A stretch of DNA of 64,000 bases from the NCBI GenBank assembly GCA_020184695.1, contig JAANOX010000101.1, positions 62,001-126,000 on the forward strand, written 5' to 3'. Shown here one piece after another: positions 701 to 64,000 of the stretch. The notes under the pieces were generated by a model, which saw only the letters and a list, made by a program, of their open reading frames with translations, did not search any database and was not told where the DNA came from. Every line of letters begins with the position of its first letter. The stretch's first letter is position 1. A program made the position numbers and the translations under genes. Source of the DNA: Histomonas meleagridis 2922-C6/04-290x (taxonomy: Eukaryota; Protista; Parabasalia).

Positions 701-1749
701 TCAAGAATGATTTACTATAATTCTCAGAGAGTAGAATGTCAATTTTCTTTTTCAGAGGCAAGATATTATAATTCGTAAAAAAGTCAATATTTTAAGCTTC
801 ATATTTTAATATATTATAGATATTTTATAAAAATAAGATCATATAAATATACACCATGAATTTGTTTTATATTATATTTATGATAATGATGAACACTAAC
901 TATAGGATGATGGAGAAGAGCTCCAAAATATGTGGAAAATTGAATTTGTCACAAAAAGTCGACTTTTTGAATTCGATGTTATCAATTTTCAATTCTCTCA
1001 ATTTTGAATTAAAGCCTAAATTTGCGGTTTTACCCCTTAACCTTCATTTCATTAACGGTCGCGCAAGATTTACAATATTATATCAAAATTCAAACAGACT
1101 TTCTCAAATACATTTCGGATTTCTTTTTCTTATTTAATGTTTTAGTTATTTCCAATATCTTTCGCCTGTTCTGTGCTTTAAAAAGAGAAGAAGGGGAAGA
1201 TGACATCAAAAAAAGGAGACAATTTATTGGTGACGATTATAATGTATTGAAAATATTGGGTAAAAAGGGCAAATAAACCGTTTTTGCCTTTGAGGTGTGC
1301 ATAGGAAACTATTTTGATAATATCTATAAATTGTCCATCAGCTTTTAAAAGATACTCTAACTATAGATTAAATAGATTGAATAAATTGAAAATATTTTGA
1401 AAAAAAGGAACATTGTATCGGTACGTCATTCGGTATTTTTGTTTGTTCAACAGAGCAATTTTATATCTTCATAACTACACATTCTCATTGGGTGTTACTA
1501 GGCTCAGCATATTCTCCTCCGAAATATATGGAAAATATTATAATTTTTATGTTGAAATTGAGTGAAATCATGATTTTTTTAAAGATTTAAATTTTATTTT
1601 TTAAAAATAAATTCCTTGATATGCCCTCCTTAAATTATTGTCTTCTACTCATGATTTGTTTTTTGTCAAGAACTAAAAAATCCAAATGGACTATTTTTTT
1701 GACAAGATGATCTGAAAATTTTCATTTTTTTGTGAGTGCCACACCACCT

Positions 1750-4528
1750 ATATTTTAAATAAAACAAATAAATATCTTTAGCATTAATATCAATTCCTTC
1801 TTGTTTAATAAGTAATTTAACTATTTCTCGATGACCATTTTTAGATGCAAACAGAAGTGCTGTATCAAATAAAGTAAATAATTTCCAAATATTATTTTTA
1901 AATATAAAATTATTAAAATAAATTTTAAATAAAACAAATAAATATTTTTAGCATTAATATCAATTCCTTCTGTTCCCAAGAAGTACTCTGGTGAATTCCC
2001 AGTGTGGCCTCTTGTTGATGCAAACATAAGTGCTGTTTCAAATAATTTAAATAATTTTCATGTATTATTTTGAAATTTCAAATGATTAAAATAAATATTA
2101 AATAAAACAAATAAATATTTTTAGCATTAATATCAATTCCTTTTTGATCAAGAAGTAATTTAACTATTTCTGTATGACCATTTGAAGATGCACAAATAAG
2201 TGCTGTGTCAAACAATTTAAATATTTTCCAAATATTATTTTGAAATATAAAATTATTAAAATAAATATTATCTTTAGCATTAATATCATTCCTTCTTGTT
2301 CAAGAAGTAATTTGGCAATTTCAGTGGCTCCTTGGTTGATGCAAACATAAGTGCTGTTTCAAATAATTTAAATAATTTTCATGTATTATTTTGAAATTTC
2401 AAATGATTAAAATAAATATTAAATAAAACAAATAAATATTTTTAGCATTAATATCAATTCCTTTTTGATCAAGAAGTAATTTAACTATTTCTGTATGACC
2501 ATTTGAAGATGCACAAATAAGTGCTGTGTCAAACAATTTAAATATTTTCCAAATATTATTTTGAAATATAAAATTATTAAAATAAATATTATCTTTAGCA
2601 TTAATATCAATTCCTTCTTGTTCAAGAAGTAATTTGGCAATTTCAGTGTGGCCTCTTGTTGATGCAAACATAAGTGCTGTTTCAAATAATTTAAATAATT
2701 TTCATGTATTATTTTGAAATTTCAAATGATTAAAATAAATATTAAATAAAACAAATAAATATTTTTAGCATTAATATCAATTCCTTTTTGATCAAGAAGT
2801 AATTTAACTATTTCTATATTACCATAAATAGATGCACACATAAGCGCTGTACCAAATATTTTAAATATTTCCCAAATATTATTTTAAAATATAAAATAAT
2901 AAAAATAAATCATATTTTTACCATTAATATCAATTCCTTCTTGTTCAAGAAGTAATTTAACAATTTCAATAAAACCTCTTAAAGATGCAGACATAAGTGC
3001 TGTAAAAAATAATTTGAATAATTTTCATATAATATTTTGAAATTTCAATTGATTAAAATAAATTTTAAATAAAACAAATAAATATTTTTATCATTAATAT
3101 TAATTCCTTCTTGTTCAAGAAGTAATTTAACCAATTCTTTATGACCATTTAAAGATGCACAAATAAGTGCTGTATCAAATAATTAAAATATTTTCCAAAT
3201 ATTATTTTGAAATATAAAATGATGAAAATAAACATAGTTTTTTGTATTAATATCAATTCCTTCTTGTTTAATAAGTAATTTAACTATTTCTCGATGACCA
3301 TTTTTAGATGCAAACAGAAGTGCTGTATCAAATAAAGTAAATAATTTCCAAATATTATTTTGAAATATAAAATTATTAAAATAAATTACACTCTTAGAAT
3401 TAATATCAATTCCTTCTTGTTCAAGAAGTAATTTAACAATTTCAGTATAGCCTTCTGATGATGCAAACATAAGTGCTGTCATAAATAATCTAAATAATTT
3501 CCAAATATTATTTTGAAATTTCAAATTATCAAAATAAATAATAAATAAAACAAATACATATTTTTAACATTAATATCAATTCCTCCTTGTTCAAGAAGTA
3601 TTTTAACTATTTCTATATTACCATGTAAAGATGCACACATAAGTGATGTAATAAATAATTAAAATATTTTCCAGATATTATTTTGAAATATCAAATGATT
3701 AAAAAAAATTTTAAATAAAACAAATAAATATTTTTTTCATTAATATCAATTCTTTCTTGTTCAAGAAGTAATTTAACAATTTCTGTATGACCATGTAAAG
3801 ATGCACACATAATCGCTGTATCAAATAATTAAAATATTTCCCAAATATTATTTTGAAATATAAAATTATTAAAATAAATTACACTCTTAGAATTAATATC
3901 AATTCCTTTTTGTTCAAGAAGTAATTTAACAATTTCAGTATAGCCTCTTGATGATGCAAACAGAAGTGCTGTATCAAATAATTAAAATATTTCCCAAATA
4001 TTATTATGAAATTCTATATTATTAAAATAAATTTCAAATAAAAGAAATAAATATTTTTGGCATTGATATCAACGTCTTTTTGTTCAAGAAGTAATTTAAC
4101 AATTTCTATATTACCTTCCGAAGATGCTCTGGTAATTGCTGTAGCAAATAATTAAAATAATTTTCAAATATTATTTTGAAATATAAAATAATAAAAATAG
4201 ATTATATTTTTAGCATTAATGTCAATTCCTTCTTGTTCAAGAAGTAATTTAACGATTTCTATATTACTATTTAAAGTTGCACACATAAGTGCTGTATCAA
4301 ATAATTTAAATAATTTCCAAATATAATTTTGAAATTAAAAATTATTAAAAGAAATTTTAAATAAAACAAATAAATATTTTTTTCATTAATATCAATTCCT
4401 TCTTGTTCAAGAAGTAATTTAACAATTTCTATATTACCATTTGAAGATGCACACATAATCGCTGTTTCGAATAATTTAAATAATTTCCGAACATAAAATA
4501 TTTATTTTAAATCTATGGAATCAACACT
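1750..4528 (-). repeat. Tandem ankyrin array, units of 153 (=102+3x17) or 170 (=102+4x17) nt
   Basis: Measured spacing of the GCATTAATATCAATTCC anchor: 170,153,170,153,170,170,153,153,170,153,170,153,168,153,173,170. Confidence 0.95.
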
Positions 4529-5727
4529 ATTTTTAATATTGATATCACTGCTTACTTTTTGTTCTAAAATATATTTGACAAGTTCTATGTTTCCTGACTT
4601 TGCTGAGTAAACTATAATATATTTTGGAAGTTGCAAGAATTCATGAAAATGTTTGATAAGAAATATATTTCCATTAATTGCTGCTTCGATTATAATACCA
4701 CCATTTATTTTCATACCTTCTTGAAGCAAAAAAGAAAAAATTTCATAATTGTCAGATGAAATACATTTTCTTCCTAATTGATCTAATTTAATATTTTCTT
4801 CAAATTTATTTTCATAAATATATTTAAAGATATTATTCCTATGGAATTGTATTGCCGTTTCATATGCACCTTCAAACGATGAATGATTTGTTTTACATAA
4901 ATGAATGATTTCTTCATTTCCACCTGCAACTGCATATTTACCTGTATTGATCACATTAGCATAAGTAAATATTTAAAACATTTAACTGATCCAAAAAATG
5001 CTGCATAATCAATTAATGTAACATTTTCTTGATTAATAAATGAGCATTTTTCATAAAGTGATGGTTCAATTTTTTGATTAAAATCAAATTTTGTTTGTGA
5101 TGATATTTCTTGAAGCTTTTCTATATCATCATTTCGAATTATCTTTGCTGTTTCATCTGGGTTAACTCCTTCTCTAATTAATTTTTTGTGAAGTTCCCAA
5201 TCATTCTTAGAAAGTTCTTCAATATTCCCCAAGATACTGGTAATTTCATTCATAAAACCTTGTTTTTCTATGTCTTCTTTTTTCATATATTGTACAAAAT
5301 ATGAATGAATAATATTTTGAAATTTTTTTGGATTAAACAAATTATGCTCGATCAAATCATTGATTATAAAGTTTGCTTCTTGTTGTTTAGATGTAGAAAT
5401 ATAATTAATAAAAATTTTAATGATTTGTGGTGAACTTTCATTTATTTCTTCTTCTTTTGATTGAATTAATAGTAAATATTCTAAATAGATATCAAATTTA
5501 TTCCTTTGAGAAAAAAATGTTGTATAAACAATATGACAAATGATAAAGTTTAACAAACATGGTTGAAATGAATTAAATAATTGAGTTGTTTGTTGAACTG
5601 ACGAATGAAGATTTTCTTCTTTTAAATTAAAAACAATTTGCTGGAGAACACTTAACAATTTTATGTTATCATCTGATGGATTTTTGGTGGAGATTGATTC
5701 GTTGTTGATACTAATACTTTCATTCAT
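1750..5727 (-). pseudogene. Ankyrin locus 1: DUF3447-type head (5727..4529, frameshift at ~4955) plus 17 ankyrin repeats whose hairpin codons are interrupted by 17-nt inserts; 3' end truncated at ~1750
   Basis: Head ORFs 4951..5727 and 4502..4954 join by a short deletion (KYLLM/ANVINTGKYAVAGG vs homolog FLMLNGSNMKNTGKYAVAGG). Repeats TALxxASxxGxxEIVKLLLEQEGIDINAK recur at 153- or 170-nt spacing. Confidence 0.8.
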
Positions 5728-8737: not shown

Positions 8738-11700
8738 GAAGATGCAATTATAAGTGCTGTATTAAATAGACAAAACAGATTCCAATTATTTTTTTGAAAC
8801 ATCAAACTGTTAAAATGATCTTTGAACAAAAGATTTAAATATTTTTTTCATTGATATTAATTCCTTCTTGTTGAAGAAGTAATTTAACTAATTCGATATT
8901 ACCAACCTGTGTTGCAATCATTAGTGCTGTATCAAATGATATAAAAAAATTCCATATATTCATTATAAACATGAAATTTTCAAAATAAGCAGAAAGCAGA
9001 TGAAATAAAAATTTTTCTTATTGGTGTCAATTTCTTTTTGTTCAAGAAGAAATTTAATCATTTCAATAGGTCGATTTTTTATTGCAAGCATTAAAATAGT
9101 TTCAAATACTTAAATGAAATTCCATATTTTAAGCAAAAATTTTAAATTATTTAAGTAAATTTTAAATTATTTGTACAAATATATTGCAAATTAAGATTTA
9201 TTCTTTCATCCCTAACAAGTAATTTAAAAACGTCGTTATGTGTTGAATAATATGTTCTCAAAAGTGCTGTCCAAAATAATTTAAATAATTTCCAAATATT
9301 ATTTTCAAATATTAAATTATTAAAATAAATTTTAAGCAAAATAAATAAATGTCTTTAGCATTAATATCAATTCCTTCTTGTTCAAGAAGTAATTTAACTA
9401 TTTCTGTACGACCTTTCCAAGATGCTAAAATAAGTGCTGTTTCAAATAATTCAAAAAATTTCCAAATATTATTTTGAAATATTAAATGATTAAAATAAAA
9501 TTTAAATAAAAGAAATAAAAATTTTTGGCATTAACATCAATTCCTTCTTCAAGAAGTAATTTAACGATTTCTGTATAACCTTTTTGAGATGCAATCATAA
9601 GCGCTGTTTTAAATAACCGAAATAATTTCCAAATATATAATATCAAATTATTAAAAGAAATAATAAATAAAACAAATAAATATCTTTGGCATTAATATCA
9701 ATTCCTTTGTGTTCAAGAAGTAATTTAACGATTTCTATATAACCATATTCAGATGCTAAAATAAGTGCTGTTTTAAATAATTTAAATAATTTCCAAATAT
9801 TATTTTGAAATCCAAAATTATTAAAATAAATATCAAATAAAACAAAAAGATATCACGATGATTAACATCAAAACCTGCTTGTTTAGAAAGCTATTGTATT
9901 GTTTCAAAATAACCATTTTTTACAGCTTTTAAAAGTTGTTCATTAAACAAATTAAAGAAAATTTAAATAGAAATAGAAAACATAAAACAATTAAAACAAA
10001 TTCGATAGAAATTAAACAAATATTTATAGAAATTATATTAAAATTGTCTTGTTCAAGAATCATTTTAATTAACTCATAATTTCTTGAAGCATTTGGACAT
10101 TTGGAAATAATTGGGAAATATTTTTTATTTGTTATATAACGTTTAATAAAGAATATATTGCCATTTTTTATTGCTTCTTCTAAAATTTCTTTGCTTATTT
10201 TCATACCAGCTGATTTTAAAAACATAAACATTTTGAAATTAGAATGTTTCAAGCAATACATTCCGTATTTTGTTAAATCTTTATTTGGTATTTTTTCTTT
10301 TCATAAAAATATTGAAAAATTTCATTCCGGTGAAATTCAATTGCTGTTTTATATACTTCTTCAATTGATAAAATGTTTTTTTCACATAAATATGTAATTT
10401 CTAAATTTCCACCTGCAATTGCATACTTTAATGTGCTTTTGATTGTAGAACCATTCATAAGTAAAAATCGAAAACATTTAATTGCTCCAAAAAATGCTGC
10501 AAAATCAATTATTGAGACATTCTTTTCATTAACAAATGAATATCTTTCATAAAGTGATGGTTCAATTTTTTGATTAAAATCAAAATCACTTTGTGATGAT
10601 ATTTCTTGAAGTTTTTCAATTTCATCATTTCGAATTATTTTCGCAAGTTCATTTGGATTAACTCCTTCTTTAATTAATTTCTTATGAAGTTCCCAATTAT
10701 TCTTTGATAGTTCTTCAAGATCTAAAAGAAACTGTTCTTGAAATTTATAGTTATAATTATGAATTTCTTCATCTGTATAATAATTGGCGTACCATAATGA
10801 TCTCTTATTCTGAACAAAATCAGGTTGAATTATTTCATGTTCGATCATTTTAGTAAGTAAATGATTTGATTCTTGTGATTCTGATATTAATAAATAATTC
10901 TTAAATACATTAATTATTGAGTTACCTTGAATGTCTTTTTCTAATGTTTCGATAGATTTCAAAAAATTTAAATATAAAATTGCTTCATTTCTTTGAGTTA
11001 AAAAAGCTGTATATATTAAACTACTAATTAAAAGATTAAAAGCATATGGAAAATTATTATCAAAAAACTTCATCACAGATTTAGAAGATGTTTCAATATT
11101 ATCCTCTTTTAACTCAAATATAATTTTTTCTAATGATTGTAATGGAGCTGAATTGGCAATTGAAGGATTTTGGGTTCTTCTTGTTAAATTTTCTTGTGGT
11201 GTTGATGTTCTTCGAGGATTCAATGGGGGTTTTCCTTGCAACTTCATATCTGCTAAGTGCTTCAAAAGTGAATTTTAACGTCTTTTTGGAGGGTATATTT
11301 TTACAGAAGATAAAATGAAAGGAAAATTTGTTTATTAAACAAGGTTTTAATCACAATTTCGATTACCTATGTAGCATCTTAGAAATTGGTTACAAAATGG
11401 GATTCTTTAATGAACTCAAATACTTAAGTAGAACATGTCTAGAACATAAAAAACTTTATTTTTTTTTTTTGATTAAATGATGAAAAAGAACACATATTAT
11501 GTTAAGAGGTGAATGATTTTCTTTTCTTACATGAAGCACAAAAAAAAAAAAAATTAATGTAAAAATTTAGGTAATATTTCTTTTTAGTTCATTGTCATTT
11601 GCTGATATCTTATCTATTTAAAAGCAATATCAACACTGTTATTCCTTTATTAAATCCTTGAGATTTGAAGGGGGAAAGAAGAATAAAGCATTAAATATAA

Positions 11701-14361: not shown

Positions 14362-17273
14362 TTAAATATTAACAAAACGTTCTTCTTTGAAATCTTCTGC
14401 AAATGGGTCTTCATCAATAACATTCATATTACCACCCATTGAAAATGTGCCAATACTTTTATTTTCATTCACTTCATAACTAACAACACTTTCGTTTTTA
14501 TTTTTGTTATGAGAACGAATAACAAAAACAACAACAAATACAATAATTAAAATAATAACAGCTAAAACACATACAATAATAATAATGATAATATTATTAT
14601 TAAATTGATTTTCATTATTATTTTGTTCATTTTGTTTGATAATTGTATAAAAATCTGAATAAAAATAAAAATATGTCGAATATTGAACAAATGTATAATT
14701 ATAACAAATGAATTCTGTGATTAGATATGTAAATGATGATGATATCATTGAAATGACATATGTATTTGTTACAAATGAATAATTAATAATAGTATTAACA
14801 TAAGATAAAGAATATTTCATTGTTAATGAATGCGATATTGTTGTATAAAATTCTAATAAATCACTTATAAATGTATTTGATTGAGAAAATGTATTTGATT
14901 GTAAAAATGTATTTGATTGAGAAAATGAATTCGATTTTGTAAAAAGATTTGAAGATGTAAATACATTTGATTGAGAAAATGTATTTGATTGTGAAAATGT
15001 ATTTGATTGTGAATATGTATTTGATTGTGAAAATGTATTAGATTGTGAATATGTATTTGATTGTGAAAATGTATTAGATTGTGAATATGTATTTGATTGT
15101 GAAAATGTATTAGATTGTGAATATGTATTTGATTGTGAAAATGTATTAGATTGTGAATATGTATTTGATTGTGAAAATGTATTAGATTGTGAATATGTAT
15201 TTGATTGTGAAAATGTATTAGATTGTGAATATGTATTTGATTGTGAAAATGTATTAGATTGTGAATATGTATTTGATTGAGAATATGTATTTGATTGTGA
15301 AAATGTATTAGATTGTGAATATGTATTTGATTGAGAATATGTATTTGATTGTGAAAATGTATTAGATTGTGAATATGTATTTGATTGTGAAAATGTATTA
15401 GATTGTGAATATGTATTTGATTGAGAATATGTATTTGATTGTGAAAATGTATTAGATTGTGAATATGTATTTGATTGAGAATATGTATTTGATTGTGAAA
15501 ATGTATTAGATTGCGAAAATGTATTTGATTGTGAATATGTATTTGATTGTGAAAATGTATTAGATTGTGAATATGTATTTGATTGTGAAAATGTATTAGA
15601 TTGTGAATATGTATTTGATTGAGAATATGTATTTGATTGTGAAAATGTATTAGATTGTGAATATGTATTTGATTGTGAATATGTATTTGATTGTGAAAAT
15701 GTATTAGATTGTGAATATGTATTTGATTGTGAAAATGTATTAGATTGTGAATATGTATTTGATTGAGAATATGTATTTGATTGTGAAAATGTATTAGATT
15801 GTGAATATGTATTTGATTGAGAATATGTATTTGATTGTGAAAATGTATTAGATTGTGAATATGTATTTGATTGAGAATATGTATTTGATTGTGAAAATGT
15901 ATTAGATTGCGAAAATGTATTTGATTGAGAGTATGTATTTGATTGCGAAAATGTATTCGATTTTGTAAAAACATTTGATGATGTAAATATATTTGATTTT
16001 GTAAATGGATATGATGGTGTCGGTGTAAATTGAAGTGTTGGCATTATAGAGCAACCAGAAGCTGCAGTAGTAATTACATTAAATCCTCCAAATGTACTCC
16101 CTTGATATGAATTTAATACCATAATATCGATACTGATTGTGCAACTACTAAAAGCTTTTTCATTAATTTCTGGTTCAGTTTCTCCATAAAAATAAAAACA
16201 TTTCAGTGAATTACAAGAATAAAATGCATTAGTTCCGATTGATTTTACATTTTTACCGATATATATCGTTGTTAAACTAGAACATGCTGAAAATAAGCTA
16301 GTTGGAATTTCTGGTACTTCATTAGAAATGGTAAAAGTTTTTAGATTGGAACATACATAAAATGTAAACGTATTAAAACTATTAATTTTTTCACAATTAA
16401 TAATCTCTTCCAAATTGGTAGCATGATAGAATGCGCTACCTTTTAAAGTCGTAACAGTTGATGGAATTTCATACACAGAACCTGTTTTTGTTGGAGGATA
16501 ACAAATAAGTGTTTGTACATTTTTATCATAAAGAACATCATCATTATTTAAATTACAATAATTTTGATTATTTGCTGCACTTTATAATATGCTATATTAC
16601 TACAAAGATTAAAAGCAGAATCTTCAATTGTAGCAACTGAAGCTGGAATTGTTATACCACTCAAAGCAGTACAACCCTGAAATGCACAACTTTTAATGGT
16701 TTGAACATTTTCTCCAATACTAACTGACTCTATATTTGAACACAAATTAAAAGCATGATTACTAATTACTGTGACAGAACTTCCAATTACAACTGATATC
16801 AAAGATTTCCATGAATCAAATGCACTTAATGAAATTGTTGTGACTCCACTTTCAATTATAAGATATTTAGTCGAATCTTTATATGTAGATCTATCATTGT
16901 ATTCATCTAAGGTCGTGATTGTGAATGTTTCTCCTGAAAATCCTTCATTTGAATGTATAAAAAATAGAACGAACATCAAAAGAAGAAGTTTATTGGTGAT
17001 ACTTTCATAAGATTTTAAATGTAATTTTTTTTTAAAATAACTCTTTTTGAAAAATAATAAAGCAGCAAAAAACATAATTGAAATTACTAAAACATTATCT
17101 ATTTTGAAAAATGAAGACAAAACATTGGAGTCTTTTGCTGATGCAAGAAAACGATAAGATATACACTTGAATTGGAATATAAATTTCGAAGTAAAAGGAG
17201 ATATTTGATTATCTTCATGGTAATTGCACGAGCAAATTTCAAGCATTGTAAGAATAAAACAATATGCAAACAT
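14362..17273 (-). CDS. BspA-like (TpLRR) single-pass surface protein with SQSNT(F/Y) repeat stalk; 1-nt frameshift at ~16579
   Basis: LRR_5-type repeats (IGENVQTIKSCAFQGCTALSGITIPASV). The gap between ORFs reads V-AANNQNYCNLNNDDVLYDKNVQTLICYPP once one base is restored. C-terminal TM and acidic tail EDPFAEDFKEERF. Confidence 0.85.
14870..15960 (-). repeat. 18-bp coding minisatellite (~60 copies) encoding SQSNT(F/Y)
   Basis: Units gtatttgattgtgaaaat / gtattagattgtgaatat on the + strand. Confidence 0.95.
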
Positions 17274-24947: not shown

Positions 24948-25249
24948 GTAAAACAAATATTTAATAATTTTTTTTAATATGAGAAAAACGAAAATAATTT
25001 CATTTGGTAGAGAATAAGTTTTTTCAAATGATAAAATAAATTTTTTGGGTTATATTTATAAGATATTTAATAATTTTTTTTTAAAAAAATGGAACAAATA
25101 TTTTGGAAGCAAAAATTGTTTACATTATAAGTTTTTGATTAGCAATCTTTGATATTTTTTAAGTTTTATGGAAAACAAACTTGAATATTTCTAAAATGTT
25201 CATTTCTTCATTTGCTTTTAACCAAGTGAATTAGATTTTTAAGACGTAG

Positions 25250-25254
<5 letters not shown>

Positions 25255-25282
<28 letters not shown>
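25255..25282. repeat. (TA)n microsatellite
   Basis: About 13 TA units. Confidence 0.9.
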
Positions 25283-25283
<1 letters not shown>

Positions 25284-25370
25284 ATGAAAACTTTTTGTTG
25301 TTATTTGTGTTTGATAATTTTTCACAATAAAAAATTTTAATAAACATTACATAAATAATATTTTATTAAA

Positions 25371-27196
25371 TTATTGGTTTGAGTTTTGAAAAGAACTCAG
25401 TAATCTGATGATTTCTTGATAGCCATTTGCAGATGCATACATAAATGCTGTTTCAAATAAATTAAACATATTCCAAATCTTCAATTAAAACCATAAACCA
25501 ATAAGATAAATTCTAAATAAATAAAATATATATTCTTTGCATTTATATCAATTCCTTCTTTTGTGATAAGTAATTTTATAACATCGACATTTCCATTTTG
25601 AGATGCTTTTATTAATGCTGTTGCAAATTCTTTGAATAAATTCCGAAAATTACTTTTTAATAATAAATCACCAAAATAAAACCTAAATAATCTAAATAAA
25701 TATCTTCAGCATTTACCTCTATTTCTTCTTGTTCAAGAAGTAATTTAACTATTTCTGTTTTCCCATTTCTAGAAGCTTTCATAAGTGCCGTTTCACATAA
25801 AATGAAAAAATTCCAAATATTATTTTGAAATCCAAAATCATTAAAACAAATTTTAAACAAAACAAATAAATATTTTTAGCATTAATATCAATTCCATTTT
25901 GATCAAGAAGTAATTTAACTATTTCTTTATTACCCACTTCAGATGCGAAAATTAATGCTGTATCAAACAAAATGAAAAAATTCCAAAAATTATTATCAAA
26001 TCGAAAATTATACAGAAAAACATTAAACAAAATCAAAAAATATCTTTAGCATCAATATCGATACCGTTTTGTTCAAGAACAAATTTAACAAGTTCAATAT
26101 TTTCTGATTTAGTTGCAGAAACAAGAATATCTTTTGGAGGCTTATTTCCTTCAAGAAAATATTTAATTAAATATAAGTTACCAATTCTTGCTGATTTATT
26201 CATAATTGAATAACTTATTTTAAATTTTTCTTTTTCCAAAAAAGAAAGAACTTTATAGTTATGGTATAAAACACATTTTTCACCTAATTCAATTAAATTT
26301 AATTCGGCAATTTGATTTTCATAAAGATAATGAAATATTTTATTTCGATGGAATTCAATTGCCGCTTCATAAGAACCATCAAAAGATGAATTATTTTGTT
26401 CACATAAATGAAATATTTCGACATTTCCACCAGCAACAGCATATTTACCAGTGTTTTTCATGTTAGATCCATTTAACATTAAGAATTTAAAACAATTAAT
26501 TGCGCCAAAAAATGCAGCATAATCAATTAATGTTACATTATTCTGATTTATAAATGAACATCGTTCATAAAGTGATGGCTCAATTCTTTGATTAAATGCA
26601 AAGTTCTGTTGTGATGTTAAATCTTGAAGTTTTTCAATTTTATCATTCCGAATTATTTGTGCAATTTCATTTGGATTAATTCCATTATAAACATATTCTT
26701 TATGAAGCTTCCAATTATCTTCTTTAAGTTCATTAATTTTCCTAAAAAATTTATTACTAAATTCACTACATTTTAATTTATTAATATCTGTATCTGATAA
26801 ACGATGTGCAAAATATAATGAACGCATTAAAATAGAATTCCCAACAATTTTGGAATCAATAAAATTTTGTTCAAGCATTTTTTCTAAAAGATAAAATGAT
26901 TCATTTTCCCAAACAAGAAGAAGAAATTTCGTAAATGCTTCGATGATTTTAATCCCTCCTTTTTGTTCAAATAATTTTAAGAAATTAAAATATATTTCAT
27001 AATTATTCATAGTATGTGAAAATGAAAAATATAATAAATTACTAAGAAGTAAATTAAAAGAAAGTGGGTAATTTGTATCAATCAAATTTGTAATTGATTC
27101 AATAGATTCTATGATATTTTCTTCATTTAAATTCCATGTTATTTCTTGTAATGTTTTTAGATACTGTATAATTTTATTATCTATTTCAATGCTCAT
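25371..27196 (-). CDS. Ankyrin locus 3: DUF3447-type ankyrin protein, intact 517-aa ORF if sixteen 17-nt inserts are removed
   Basis: 385-aa head, then 80-nt spacers at 25962..26041, 25792..25871, 25622..25701 and 25452..25531, ending in capping repeat TAFMYASANGYQEIIRLLSSFQNSNQ*. 1826-16x17=1554 nt=518 codons with no internal stop. Confidence 0.8.
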
Positions 27197-27612
27197 GAAT
27201 CATCAAAATTTTTGGAATATTTTAATAATTATGTCAATTTCTTTATTCACAAAATGACAAATATTCTGAATTTTTAAATCAGTCATTTTATAAAATTTTA
27301 TAAAAAACAAATCATGAAATAAAACAAATATCAAGACTTATACTTATCATTTTTTTCTTAACTTAAAAATCTTTTTTGGCGTCATTATATCTGATTTTTG
27401 TAATTAATATGTTTTAATCAATTTTCACTTTTTTTCGATAAGAAAGATAAGACCTAATACATAATATTAATTTCCATTTTTATTTTTTATTAATTATTTA
27501 TATGAATTCATTCCTATTTCTGAAAGTAAATCGAATTCTTTTTCTCGTAAAATAAACGTATGCATTTTTGAAAAAACATTTTGAGTACTTTATAAACATT
27601 TTACATTAACCG

Positions 27613-61142: not shown

Positions 61143-64000
61143 TTAAGTTCTGTATTTTATTTTGAATATAGAACGGTTAAATTTAACCTTTTGATTACCC
61201 CTTTTTGAGTGTCGACCGTTTATTGACCGTCGGTTATAATTTGTATTGATTTCTTTTTGTTTAAGTAATCCAATGATTTCTTTTGTGCTATACTCAGATG
61301 CAATCAGAAGTGCTGTTCTAAATAATTTATATTATTTCCAGAAAAAAATTTAAAATATAAAATTAGTAAAATAAACCCCAAACAAACCATATAACCATCC
61401 TTAATATTAATATCAATTTCTTCTTGTTCAAGAAGTAATTTAACTATTTCTATATCGCTTTTTTGAGATGCAATCATAAGTGCTGTTTTAAATAGTTTGA
61501 ATAATTTCCAAATATTATATTGAAATCCAAAATCATTAAAATAAATTTTAAATAAAACAAATAAATATCTTGAGCATTAATATCAATTCTTTCTTGTTCA
61601 AGAAGTAATTTAACTATTTCTGTTTTTCCATTCCAAGATGCAATCATAAGTGCTGTCCAAAATAATTTAAATAATTTCCAAACAATATTTTAAAATAGCA
61701 AATTATTAAAATAAATCCAAAGTAAAACAAATAAATATCTTTAGCATTAACATCAATTCTTTCTTGTTCAAGAAGTAATTTAACTATTTCTATACAACCT
61801 TTTTCAGATGCAATCATAAGCGCTGTTTTAAATAATATTAATAATTCCCAAATATTATTTTTAAATAAGAAATAAAACAAATAAATTCTAAATAAAATAC
61901 ATAAATATTTTTTTCGTTAATATCAATTCCTTCTTGTTCAAGAAGTAATTTAACTATTTCTGTATGACCATAAAAAGATGCACAAATAAGTGCTGTTTTT
62001 TTGAATTTAAATAATTTCCAAATATTATTTTGAAATATTAAATTATTAAAATAAAATTTAAATAAATCAAATAAATATCTTGAGCATTAATATCAATTCC
62101 TTCTTTTTCAAGAAGTAATTTAACTATTTCTAAAAACTTCTTTTTACTTGCATAAATAAGTGCTGTTTTTTTTAATTTAAGTAATTTCCAAAAATTATTT
62201 AAAAATATCAAATTATTAAAATAATGATTAAATAAAATAAAGAAATATCCTCAGTATTAATATTAATACTTTCTTGTTCAAGAAGTAATGTAACTATTTC
62301 TCTCCTATCTTCTTCAGAAGCATACATAAGTGCTGTTTTAAATAACCTGAATAATTCCCAAATATTAAAGAGAAATATAAATTTATAAAAATAAGCCCTA
62401 TATATTAAATCCTAACATTCTTAGAATTAATATTAATTCCTTTTTGTATAAGTGATTTAACCATTTCTATGTCACCTACTAAAGATGCCAATATAAAAAT
62501 TATTTGAAATAATATGAATTATTTTCAAATATTATCTATAAATATCAAATTATTAGAAAAGAAATAAACTTTAGTTAGTATATCGATTCCTTTTTGTTTA
62601 ACAACTGATTTAAGTAATCTCTTATAATTTTTTTCAGATGCATTCATAATGTCTACATATAATTATTTAAATAATTTCTAATTATCAAAATAAAATATCA
62701 ATATCTTGTAAATTAATTTCAATTTCATCTTTTTCAAGAAGTAATTTCACTAATTCTTTATTGAAATTTTTTAATAAAAATATGAGTGCTGTAAAATATC
62801 ATATGAATAAAAGCCAAATATTATTTTGAAACATAAATTTATAAACATATACGCTGGGTAATACATAATAACATCTTTTGCATTAATATCAATACCTTTT
62901 TGCTCAAGAAGTATTTTAGCTATTTCTTTTTGCTTATAAACAGCTGCATAAATAAGTGCAGTTTCAAAAAAATTTAATAATTTCCAAATATTATTTTAAA
63001 ATATTATATTATTCAAACAAATATTATACATAATATATAAATATTTTTAGCATTAATATCAATTCCTTTTTGCCTAAGAAGTAAATTAACTATTCTTATA
63101 TTCCCATTTTTAGTTGCAAGCATGAGTGATGTTTCATATACTTTAAAGAATTTCCAAATTTTGTTTGGAAATATAAAATCATCAAAATAAATTAAATAAA
63201 AAGTTAGTAAACAGTTTTGGAATTAATATCAATTCCTTCTTGTTTAAGAAGTAGTTCCACTATTTCAAAACGATTTTCTTCAGATGACCAAATAAGTGGT
63301 GTTAGTAATATTGTAATTTTATTCCAAATATAATGTGCAAATATCGTAATATTGAAATCAATATAGAATCAAAGAAAAAAACATCTTTGGAATTAATATC
63401 AATTCCTTTTTGCTCAACGAGTGTTTTGACAATCTCAACATGACCATAAATAGATGCATAAATAAGAGCCGACCAAAATATTTTAAATAAATTCCAAATA
63501 TTATATTAAATCATTAAATTATTAAAATAAATCCAAACTTAAAGAAATATATATCTTGAGCATTAATATCAATTTCTTTTTGCTCAACTAGTGTTTTGAC
63601 AACATTAATACGACCATTTTCAGCTGCAAGATTAAGTGCTGTATTAAATAGACTAAATAAATTCCAAATAATATTTATAAATATTAATATATAAAAATAA
63701 ATATTAAATAAAACTTTTAAACATTATTAGCATTAATATCAATTCCTTTTTGTTCAAGAAGTAATTCAACTACTTTTTGATGTCCTTTTTTAGATGCAAG
63801 CATAAGTAATGTATTAAATAATTTAAACATTTTCCAAATTCCATATTGAAAAATAATATTATGAAAATAAATCGTAAAACAATAAATTGAATATCTTTAC
63901 AATTAATGTTTACATTTTTTTGTTTTAACAAAAATTTTATTACTTCTATTTGACCATATAAAGATGCATAAAAAATTGCTGTTTTATATAATTTAAGAAA
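61143..64000 (-). CDS. Ankyrin locus 4 (5' end outside window): 17 repeats, 16 complete insert-bearing hairpins, open to stop at 61143..61145 once inserts are removed
   Basis: All 87-90-nt repeat bodies and all single-codon segments translate without a stop. Confidence 0.75.

Follow-up and report, generated by a model that had tools for sequence, protein, structure and literature searches.

The 64,000-nucleotide (nt) window analysed here, positions 62,001 to 126,000 of the forward strand of contig JAANOX010000101.1 from Histomonas meleagridis 2922-C6/04-290x, carries on its minus strand an ankyrin-repeat gene that runs from 27196 to 25371, with its ATG at 27196-27194 and a TAA stop at 25373-25371. 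The last part of its coding sequence is interrupted by sixteen inserts of 17 nt. The open reading frame (ORF) as it stands in the DNA, 26033..27196 (-), encodes 387 amino acids (aa) and ends DIF*. Its frame is open from 27196 down to 26036, and a TGA stop closes it two codons into the first of four spacers, which is T-rich. This ORF matches Pfam DUF3447 (E=8e-12; 45.4 bits against a cut-off of 26.9) and Ank_2 (6.5e-07; 30.3 bits against 27.3), and modules downstream of it score 29.8 and 25.4 bits with Pfam Ank. By these Pfam scores the predicted protein is a member of the trichomonad DUF3447 ankyrin-repeat family.

Past exon 1, three more ankyrin modules and a shorter last one follow in successive frames, with 80 nt before each. 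Each of the four 80-nt spacers can be written as four units of one 17-nt insert plus one codon, with a 20-nt period and in phase 0. This parse is counted back from the downstream exon and has zero free parameters. The spacers contain stops in every frame, and their length of 80 nt breaks the frame. When the 16 inserts (272 nt) are taken out of the 1826 nt, the remaining 1554 nt encode 517 aa with a single terminal stop. The insert-free tail consists of 34-residue ankyrin repeats, and the final repeat, which lacks a hairpin, forms the C-terminal cap. Its four loops read NSGD, KWGE, RIGA and RMGE, in agreement with the x-x-G-x turn of ankyrins, and glycine is the third loop codon in all four. 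Unlike two neighbouring ankyrin genes, this gene has no 1-nt frameshift in its N-terminal part. A sequence-only reading of this stretch had placed the ORF end two codons into the first spacer, had seen three repeats and a capping repeat beyond the stop at 80-nt offsets, and had arrived by the same subtraction at a capped 517-aa protein with all inserts exactly 17 nt long. The frames, the 34-residue repeats and the strict 17+3 parse bear this description out, and its arithmetic is correct on recomputation.

The inserts in DNA and RNA

We compared public sequencing runs that carry one organism label, two of DNA (X1-X2, 2021) and four of RNA (X3-X6, 2023), from different studies. Three of the RNA runs and DNA run X1 were aligned to 25100-27500 as Logan contigs, which are assembled on a k=31 graph, and not as reads. 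The alignment output is noisy from paralogues, and our interpretation rests on long pieces with zero mismatches.

Over the whole gene, the DNA runs contain 0.93-0.94 of the sampled 31-mers and the RNA runs 0.67-0.77; 1368 of 1796 words avoid all inserts, so that 0.76 would be expected if the RNA were fully processed. For 25455-26041, where the expected share is 0.34 for fully processed and 1.0 for unprocessed RNA, the DNA share is 0.97, three RNA runs reach 0.47-0.48 and the fourth 0.40. Contigs of DNA run X1 are collinear with the assembly, with 0 gaps, through spacers 4 and 3 (25292-25749) and spacer 1 (25905-26382), and their depth across the spacers equals that of the flanks.

The RNA contigs are different. 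At spacer 1, X4 and X5 each have a 442-nt contig made up of 25901-25964, 8 letters and 26041-26410. At spacer 4, a 288-nt contig of X3 consists of 25347-25454, 8 letters and 25531-25624. The exon flanks match with 0 mismatches in both cases (370+64 nt at spacer 1, 108+94 nt at spacer 4). The T at positions 26041 and 25531 is identical to the final base of the codon before it. Hence, 9 letters take the place of 77 nt, counted from the start of insert A to the end of insert D. Thus, at spacers 1 and 4, 68 nt are gone from the RNA and three codons' worth of sequence is left, with the outer borders where the parse had predicted them. Starts and stops of RNA unitigs also coincide with the insert borders at 25794/5, 25834/5, 25664/5 and 25624/5. 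RNA depth drops to zero in the two intergenic flanks, 25100-25342 and the part above about 27255, both of which are covered in the DNA run; the RNA libraries are therefore essentially DNA-free here, and the insert-retaining forms described below are RNA. A search with the 123-aa C-terminal piece of exon 1 as protein query found no match to proteins predicted from processed RNA contigs.

The sequence-only reading had named cDNA collinear with the genome and mRNA 3' ends inside the first spacer as outcomes that would speak against it. Neither was seen: RNA contigs have 9 letters in place of spacers 1 and 4, and the transcript reaches about 25347, 24 nt past the stop codon. Altogether, the genomic DNA contains the inserts, and a large part of the RNA lacks them, with breaks precisely where the parse had placed the borders.

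Could the joined forms have arisen in the libraries or in the assembly, by reverse transcriptase template switching between ATTT repeats or by shortcuts in the de Bruijn graph? The inserts do start and end with the same tetranucleotide and are of low complexity, the data are Logan contigs, and one contig is an odd 156-nt cycle. However, a switch from one ATTT repeat to another would cause a loss of 13 or 20 nt rather than 17, and a k=31 graph is unable to jump four 17-mers while sparing the 3 nt between each. Moreover, the identical 442-nt contig was found in X4 and X5, the DNA run has no such joints after the same assembly, and the joined form exactly restores a conserved protein frame. Such an artefact is thus highly improbable.

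It is formally conceivable that the inserts stay in the mRNA and are dealt with by ribosome bypass or frameshifting, or by a variant genetic code. The RNA contigs without spacers 1 and 4 speak against this, as do the frame shift of 80 nt and the stops in all frames, on which grounds we rejected read-through and a variant code; there are also no matching take-off and landing codons. We regard the chance of such a mechanism as negligible.

The odd contig is a 186-nt RNA contig of X4 at 25531-25674 that has the same 30-mer (25595-25624) at both ends and hence describes a 156-nt cycle. It contains module 3, 12 unplaced letters and spacer 3 from the middle of B3 to D3. A 156-nt period agrees with neither repeat class of the window (170 nt and 153 nt), and an extra tandem repeat, a close paralogue or a circular RNA may explain it.

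Partly processed RNA

A 70-nt unitig of X3 and X4, 25765-25834, runs from 30 nt before the exon/D2 border through D2, GGA, C2 and TGG. In a k=31 graph, the ends of this unitig are branch points between versions in which inserts are removed and versions in which they are retained. At spacer 3, a contig of X5 runs from 25531 through D3, GGA, C3 and ATT and departs from the genome at 25664/25665, the codon/B3 border, and a contig of X3 stops at 25624/25625, D3 being removed. The assembled RNA is without inserts A and B of every loop and without all of spacers 1 and 4, and C and D of spacers 2 and 3 are kept in RNA that makes up roughly a third to half of the depth (200 vs 520-580 in X3, 74 vs 200-226 in X4, 55-71 vs 100 in X5). 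These C- and D-retaining forms account for an RNA share of 0.48 rather than 0.34, as their 80-90 extra words bring the expected share to 0.48-0.50.

D2, which ends in TGT, and C3, which ends in TTC, are the only two of the 16 inserts without a 3' TTT, and both belong to retained pairs. Their well-formed partners are retained alongside them in unbroken unitigs, and C2 equals the consensus at 17/17 positions. We infer that the 3' UUU matters, that C and D are removed in a coupled manner, and that the A and B pair is removed first. The elements of the gene are listed in Table 1.

Table 1. Exons and inserts of the ankyrin gene in transcription order. "Parse" is the 17+3 parse described in the text.
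Element	Positions	Strand	Evidence and remarks
Exon 1, 385 codons from the start codon to GAT, the codon adjoining spacer 1	26042..27196	-	DUF3447 and first ankyrin repeats; RNA contigs collinear, 0 gaps
Insert A1 (ATTTTTTGATTTTGTTT), then codon AAT 26022-26024	26025..26041	-	Parse; RNA contig piece starts 26041/26042
Insert B1 (GTTTTTCTGTATAATTT), then codon TCG 26002-26004	26005..26021	-	Parse; within 77 nt replaced by 9 letters in RNA
Insert C1 (ATTTGATAATAATTTTT), then codon GGA 25982-25984	25985..26001	-	Parse; within 77 nt replaced by 9 letters in RNA
Insert D1 (ATTTTTTCATTTTGTTT), then exon 2	25965..25981	-	Parse; border at 25964 matched exactly by end of RNA contig piece
Exon, repeat module 1 (D-TALIFAS...INAKN), 31 codons	25872..25964	-	Pfam Ank 6e-07; covered by RNA contigs
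Insert A2 (ATTTATTTGTTTTGTTT), then codon AAA 25852-25854	25855..25871	-	Parse; RNA share of 0.47-0.48 explained without its 31-mers
Insert B2 (ATTTGTTTTAATGATTT), then codon TGG 25832-25834	25835..25851	-	Parse; RNA unitig 25765-25834 ends at codon/B2 border, a branch point
Insert C2 (ATTTCAAAATAATATTT), then codon GGA 25812-25814	25815..25831	-	Parse; kept in part of RNA, in unbroken unitig with D2
Insert D2 (ATTTTTTCATTTTATGT; 3' TGT, not TTT)	25795..25811	-	Parse; kept in part of RNA; unitig starts 30 nt before exon/D2 border
Exon, repeat module 2 (E-TALMKAS...VNAED)	25702..25794	-	Pfam Ank 1.6e-05; parse
Insert A3 (ATTTATTTAGATTATTT), then codon AGG 25682-25684	25685..25701	-	Parse; k-mer share
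Insert B3 (TTTTATTTTGGTGATTT), then codon ATT 25662-25664	25665..25681	-	Parse; X5 RNA contig departs from genome at 25664/25665
Insert C3 (ATTAAAAAGTAATTTTC; 3' TTC, not TTT), then codon GGA 25642-25644	25645..25661	-	Parse; kept in part of RNA
Insert D3 (ATTTATTCAAAGAATTT)	25625..25641	-	Kept with C3 in part of RNA; X3 contig piece ends exactly at 25624 (removed)
Exon, repeat module 3 (A-TALIKAS...INAKN)	25532..25624	-	Parse; RNA contigs
Insert A4 (ATATATTTTATTTATTT), then codon AGA 25512-25514	25515..25531	-	Parse; RNA contig piece starts 25531/25532
Insert B4 (ATTTATCTTATTGGTTT), then codon ATG 25492-25494	25495..25511	-	Parse; within 77 nt replaced by 9 letters in RNA
Insert C4 (GTTTTAATTGAAGATTT), then codon GGA 25472-25474	25475..25491	-	Parse; same X3 RNA contig
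Insert D4 (ATATGTTTAATTTATTT), then last exon	25455..25471	-	Parse; border at 25454 matched exactly by end of RNA contig piece
Last exon, capping repeat (E-TAFMYASANGYQEIIRLLSSFQNSNQ) and TAA 25371-25373	25371..25454	-	RNA contig covers 25347-25454

The partly processed forms also bear on the idea that processed RNA is transcribed from another DNA copy lacking the inserts, be it a retrogene, an allele or the result of a strain difference, with no excision at this locus. The DNA samples of 2021 and the RNA samples of 2023 do come from different studies, and single inserts are precisely absent between paralogues, as in the 153-nt class and in an insert-free loop of paralogue L001. However, the RNA holds the C2, D2, C3 and D3 of this very locus with 0 mismatches, joined to processed upstream parts, and therefore the strain that gave the RNA has the inserts. 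In addition, the DNA runs hold 0.94-0.97 of the words, DNA run X1 has no contig for 14 of the 15 joints listed with the best support, and no insert-free twin lies within the 64-kilobase window. An insert-free source is accordingly very unlikely.

Inserts and codon slots across the window

At least three further ankyrin arrays lie on the minus strand of the window, and the repeat periods are 170 nt (16 cases, four 17-mers per loop) or 153 nt (6 cases, three 17-mers per loop). There are 82 regular 17+3 units, every insert in them is 17 nt long, and within the window inserts were found in ankyrin loops only. Inserts and codon slots differ sharply in composition. The inserts are 60% T and 6% GC and conserved by position class, with a mean column entropy of 0.46 bit, whereas the slots are 37% GC and variable (1.16 bit). 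Stops are absent from the slots (0/82, against 7.6% at arbitrary spacer triplets; P about 0.0016), and the residues that they encode (K/N/R, then mixed, then G in 19/22, then D/E/K) correspond to the ankyrin turn. Only the exon-border register, one of 20 possible, gives this contrast between slot and insert.

Within the insert, T2 and T15 are invariant and A1, T3, T4, T16 and T17 nearly so. The inserts of the present gene are the most diverged of the window, with 78% identity to the position-class consensus compared with 87-94% at the other loci. The claim of the sequence-only reading that length rather than sequence is conserved agrees with this divergence and with the constant length, but goes too far in that both insert ends are conserved as well.

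Might the tail simply be decaying, the functional product being the 387-aa protein and insert removal a real process without consequence for protein? The degenerate 3' ends of D2 and C3, two inserts that persist, like their neighbours, in between a third and half of the RNA by depth, would fit this, as would the divergence of the inserts and the 1-nt frameshifts in neighbouring ankyrin genes. On the other hand, the 130 downstream codons are stop-free after insert removal and keep the ankyrin consensus and a proper capping repeat, and the stop codon lies 24 nt before the RNA 3' end. Glycine in third place in 4/4 loops is also unlike neutral decay in a genome of 28% GC. We therefore consider decay of the tail unlikely, if less so than an insert-free copy.

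Several irregularities were noted in the neighbouring arrays. At 9440-9771 (-), two irregular spacers of 74 and 77 nt have one 11-nt insert and a first insert of 14-16 nt, and one slot becomes TAA if the period is applied strictly; the array seems to be degenerating. The array at 1.6-4.8 kilobases breaks inside a spacer at about 1690-1775 (-), downstream of the module at 1863, where insert A and codon AAA are followed by unrelated, G+C-richer sequence (ATATAGGTGGTGTGGCACTC...); a truncation or an insertion may be the cause. Frame changes of 1 nt lie at about 4955-4975 and about 10285-10300 (-) in the DUF3447 parts of two neighbouring ankyrin genes, one of them at an A run, and these genes are pseudogenes or carry long-read homopolymer errors. 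Apart from the ankyrin arrays, a long plus-strand frame at 14868-16043 with a tandem peptide repeat (ENVFDCEYVFDC...) overlaps a 739-codon minus-strand frame.

Insert signals compared with those of known introns

The 5' ends of the 16 inserts are AT (13/16), GT (2/16) or TT (1/16), and their 3' ends are T (15/16) or C (1/16), with AG in 0/16. They thus lack the GT/GC...AG ends of U2-type introns. No ACTAAC- or CTAA-type branch motif is present in the insert columns, and the trichomonad branch/3' motif CTAACAYAYAG occurs neither in the 16 inserts nor elsewhere within the window. What is shared with U2-type introns is excision with exact exon ligation, as seen in the RNA contigs and k-mer shares. 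U12-type AT-AC introns have ATATCC at the 5' end, AC at the 3' end and a TCCTTAAC branch site; the inserts begin with ATTT, or with ATAT but no CC, and close with TTT. The length of the inserts, 17 nt in 16/16, is that of tiny fixed-length introns (15-17 nt class), but the canonical dinucleotides and the spread over many unrelated genes were not found within this window. There is also no sign of a tRNA-type, bulge-helix-bulge or IRE1-type substrate, as the four spacers with their flanks fold like shuffled sequences (z -0.2 to -0.7), and Rfam gave no match for the locus or the whole window. Elimination from DNA in the manner of internal eliminated sequences (IESs) is contradicted by the 31-mer shares and collinear contigs, which place the inserts in the DNA.

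Three simpler signals or structures were considered and rejected. A sequence motif alone does not suffice: with a position weight matrix built from 74 inserts of other loci, the top score in the gene falls on an exonic 17-mer at 26985 that is collinear in RNA. One intron per spacer, of 80, 77 or 68 nt, gives no x-x-G-x loop, the only GG lying 20 nt before the exon, and leaves unexplained both the 153-nt class, with one 17-mer fewer, and the RNA departures at internal borders. In three of the four folds, the exon ends pair as AAUGCU/AGCAUU: AAT GCT before and ACA GCA TT after the spacer are reverse complements over 6-9 base pairs and would close the spacer as a loop (25950-26056, 25610-25716 and 25440-25546, minus strand). 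This helix is absent in spacer 2 and in paralogue L002, and we set it aside as a probable by-product of the Asn-Ala and Thr-Ala-Leu codons.

Organism and relatives

The closest named homologues of the ORF are Histomonas meleagridis proteins, and the G+C content of the window is 28.0%, with 28.7% given for the Histomonas meleagridis genome (PMC8529796). Introns are reported as scarce in the annotation of that genome, and ankyrin genes are unmentioned in the paper (PMC8529796). A protein search with the full ORF returned unprocessed genomic paralogues only, with 34-55% identity. Paralogues with 49-54% identity on two ENA metagenome contigs, L001 and L002 (samples ERZ25039391 and ERZ28614817), repeat the 4 x (17+3) layout, and their loop codons differ (SSGY, YGGE, HDGS). 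The loops concerned lie at L001:1840-1870, L001:1955-2035, L002:1595-1675 and L002:1768-1848, and one L001 loop, NSKN-VMFE-SAL, has zero inserts and no glycine.

A scan of JGI metagenomes with a single protein gave no match, and a scan with an alignment gave distant relatives only (25-39% identity). In the distant relatives with 25-32% identity the loops are uninterrupted, one of them reading KWGR, except in L003 (Ga0074193_1000142; 27% identity, 34% GC). There, a frame-breaking T-rich 17-mer (TTTTTTTTTGTAGTATT) at L003:3898-3914 sits in a loop and parts a 502-codon frame from the next ankyrin frame. Its removal keeps the 34-residue repeat, and the other loops of L003 are uninterrupted. An alternative 14-nt GT-AG intron is possible at 3897-3910. 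The L003 17-mer may hint at an origin of the element before Histomonas.

Discussion

We favour RNA-level excision of individual 17-nt units that restores the predicted 517-aa frame, and we put the probability of this reading at about 80%. According to this model, the primary transcript of an expressed DUF3447-family ankyrin gene would carry sixteen 17-nt U-rich elements, four in each beta-hairpin loop of the last four repeats, with one codon between neighbours. Each 17-mer would be excised as an intron-like unit of its own, in phase 0, so that the three one-codon micro-exons of each loop are joined and the 517-aa reading frame is recovered. The upstream elements A and B would go first, and the downstream C and D would follow later as a coupled pair. 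A 3' UUU, a 5' R-U-U-U and the 17-nt length would be needed for removal but would not be sufficient.

A number of points weigh against this model. The contig output counts the letters between joined pieces and does not give their identity, so the retention of three codons per loop is deduced from the letter count and from protein logic. Spacers 2 and 3 have no fully processed contig among the matches listed, and their processing is read from k-mer shares, branch points and breaks at the borders. In no single molecule were all 16 inserts seen to be missing, and the kinds of the DNA and RNA runs are guessed labels ('RNA?'). The removal order and the coupling of C and D rest on unitig topology, in contigs that drop rare variants, and C and D retention at spacers 2 and 3 may mean that the yield of full-length message is modest. 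Finally, with A/G-U...U-U ends, no branch motif and no significant fold, the inserts point to no known mechanism, and four 17-mers of exon 1 that fit RTNT-N10-TTT nevertheless stay in the RNA.

How do the inserts compare with systems that have been described? The tiny introns of Stentor, Mikrocytos and Bigelowiella have GT-AG ends. They are spliceosomal, measure 15-16 nt in Stentor and other heterotrichs, 16-17 nt in Mikrocytos mackini and 18-21 nt in the Bigelowiella nucleomorph, and have conserved spliceosomal sequences; in Mikrocytos splicing is incomplete, with 37-63% of reads spliced (PMC10245619; PMC12316389). The inserts resemble them in their removal at the RNA level, extreme shortness with a tightly confined length around 15-21 nt, U/A-richness and partly incomplete processing. 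However, the tiny introns are single and scattered over gene families, whereas the inserts have A/G-T-T-T...T-T-T ends without an AG or branch motif and stand in tandem sets of 3-4, with single codons between them and always in phase 0. Within the same phylum, the type B introns of Trichomonas vaginalis are 23-25 nt long (PMC12316389). These parabasalid introns are likewise very short with a poly-T interior, but they have a 5' GT and a (T)CTAA...AG motif that the inserts lack, and at most one or two occur per gene.

Other systems share single features. Ciliate IESs are short, AT-rich, TA-bounded interruptions of coding sequence that are removed from DNA, unlike the present inserts, which remain in it. 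T4 gene 60 and the mitochondrial byp elements of Magnusiomyces are bypassed by the ribosome and stay in the mRNA, unlike these inserts, which the RNA lacks. Fritillaria has non-canonical nuclear introns without GT-AG. Like these, the nonconventional introns of Euglena (PMC11170887) and the introns of Amoebophrya (PMC7789003) are removed from pre-mRNA without GT-AG. However, the introns of these three organisms are much longer, variable in length and defined by end pairing or by repeat- or transposon-like termini, whereas the inserts are fixed at 17 nt and have U-rich ends that cannot pair and no significant fold. The single-codon exons joined on both sides resemble the 3-nt micro-exons of animals and plants (PMC8042270), but those are rare, isolated and placed between long canonical introns, and here three follow one another in each loop, 12 in the gene, with a 17-nt element on either side of each. 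We found no description of tandem intron-like sets with one-codon exons between them in the searchable full-text literature, and the 17-nt inserts match no kind of intron described there.

Which machinery could remove them? The odds are roughly even between a strongly derived mode of spliceosomal splicing, operating at the shortest length that is sterically possible, and a separate cut-and-ligate activity. The narrow length class shared with the tiny introns is the best argument for a spliceosome at its steric minimum. More tentatively, and at somewhat less than even odds, we propose a dedicated, non-spliceosomal RNA cut-and-ligate system that measures length and removes U-bounded 17-nt elements between single codons of ankyrin hairpin tips. 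Such a system may take its guidance from the ankyrin exon flanks, which are conserved, or from a trans-acting RNA. On this same tentative reading, units that are skipped or retained could change the loops in length and sequence, as each micro-exon is one complete codon, and the system could thus serve as a diversity device for a large family of binding proteins in this parasite.

If RNA-level excision of the inserts is confirmed, this gene interruption, with neither GT-AG ends nor a branch site, a fixed length of 17 nt and a tandem arrangement around single-codon exons, would break textbook limits. Either the spliceosome could then use radically different signals, or eukaryotes would possess another route of RNA excision. 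The locus is a good experimental handle, since it is unique, expressed and 1.8 kilobases long, has an intact exon 1, and holds natural variants of the element whose processing differs in efficiency.

There are also consequences for annotation. Gene callers halt in the first spacer and would call this gene at 387 aa instead of 517, and thus the ankyrin proteome of Histomonas would be systematically truncated or missed. As Histomonas is a poultry pathogen, its ankyrin annotation would be affected in practice.

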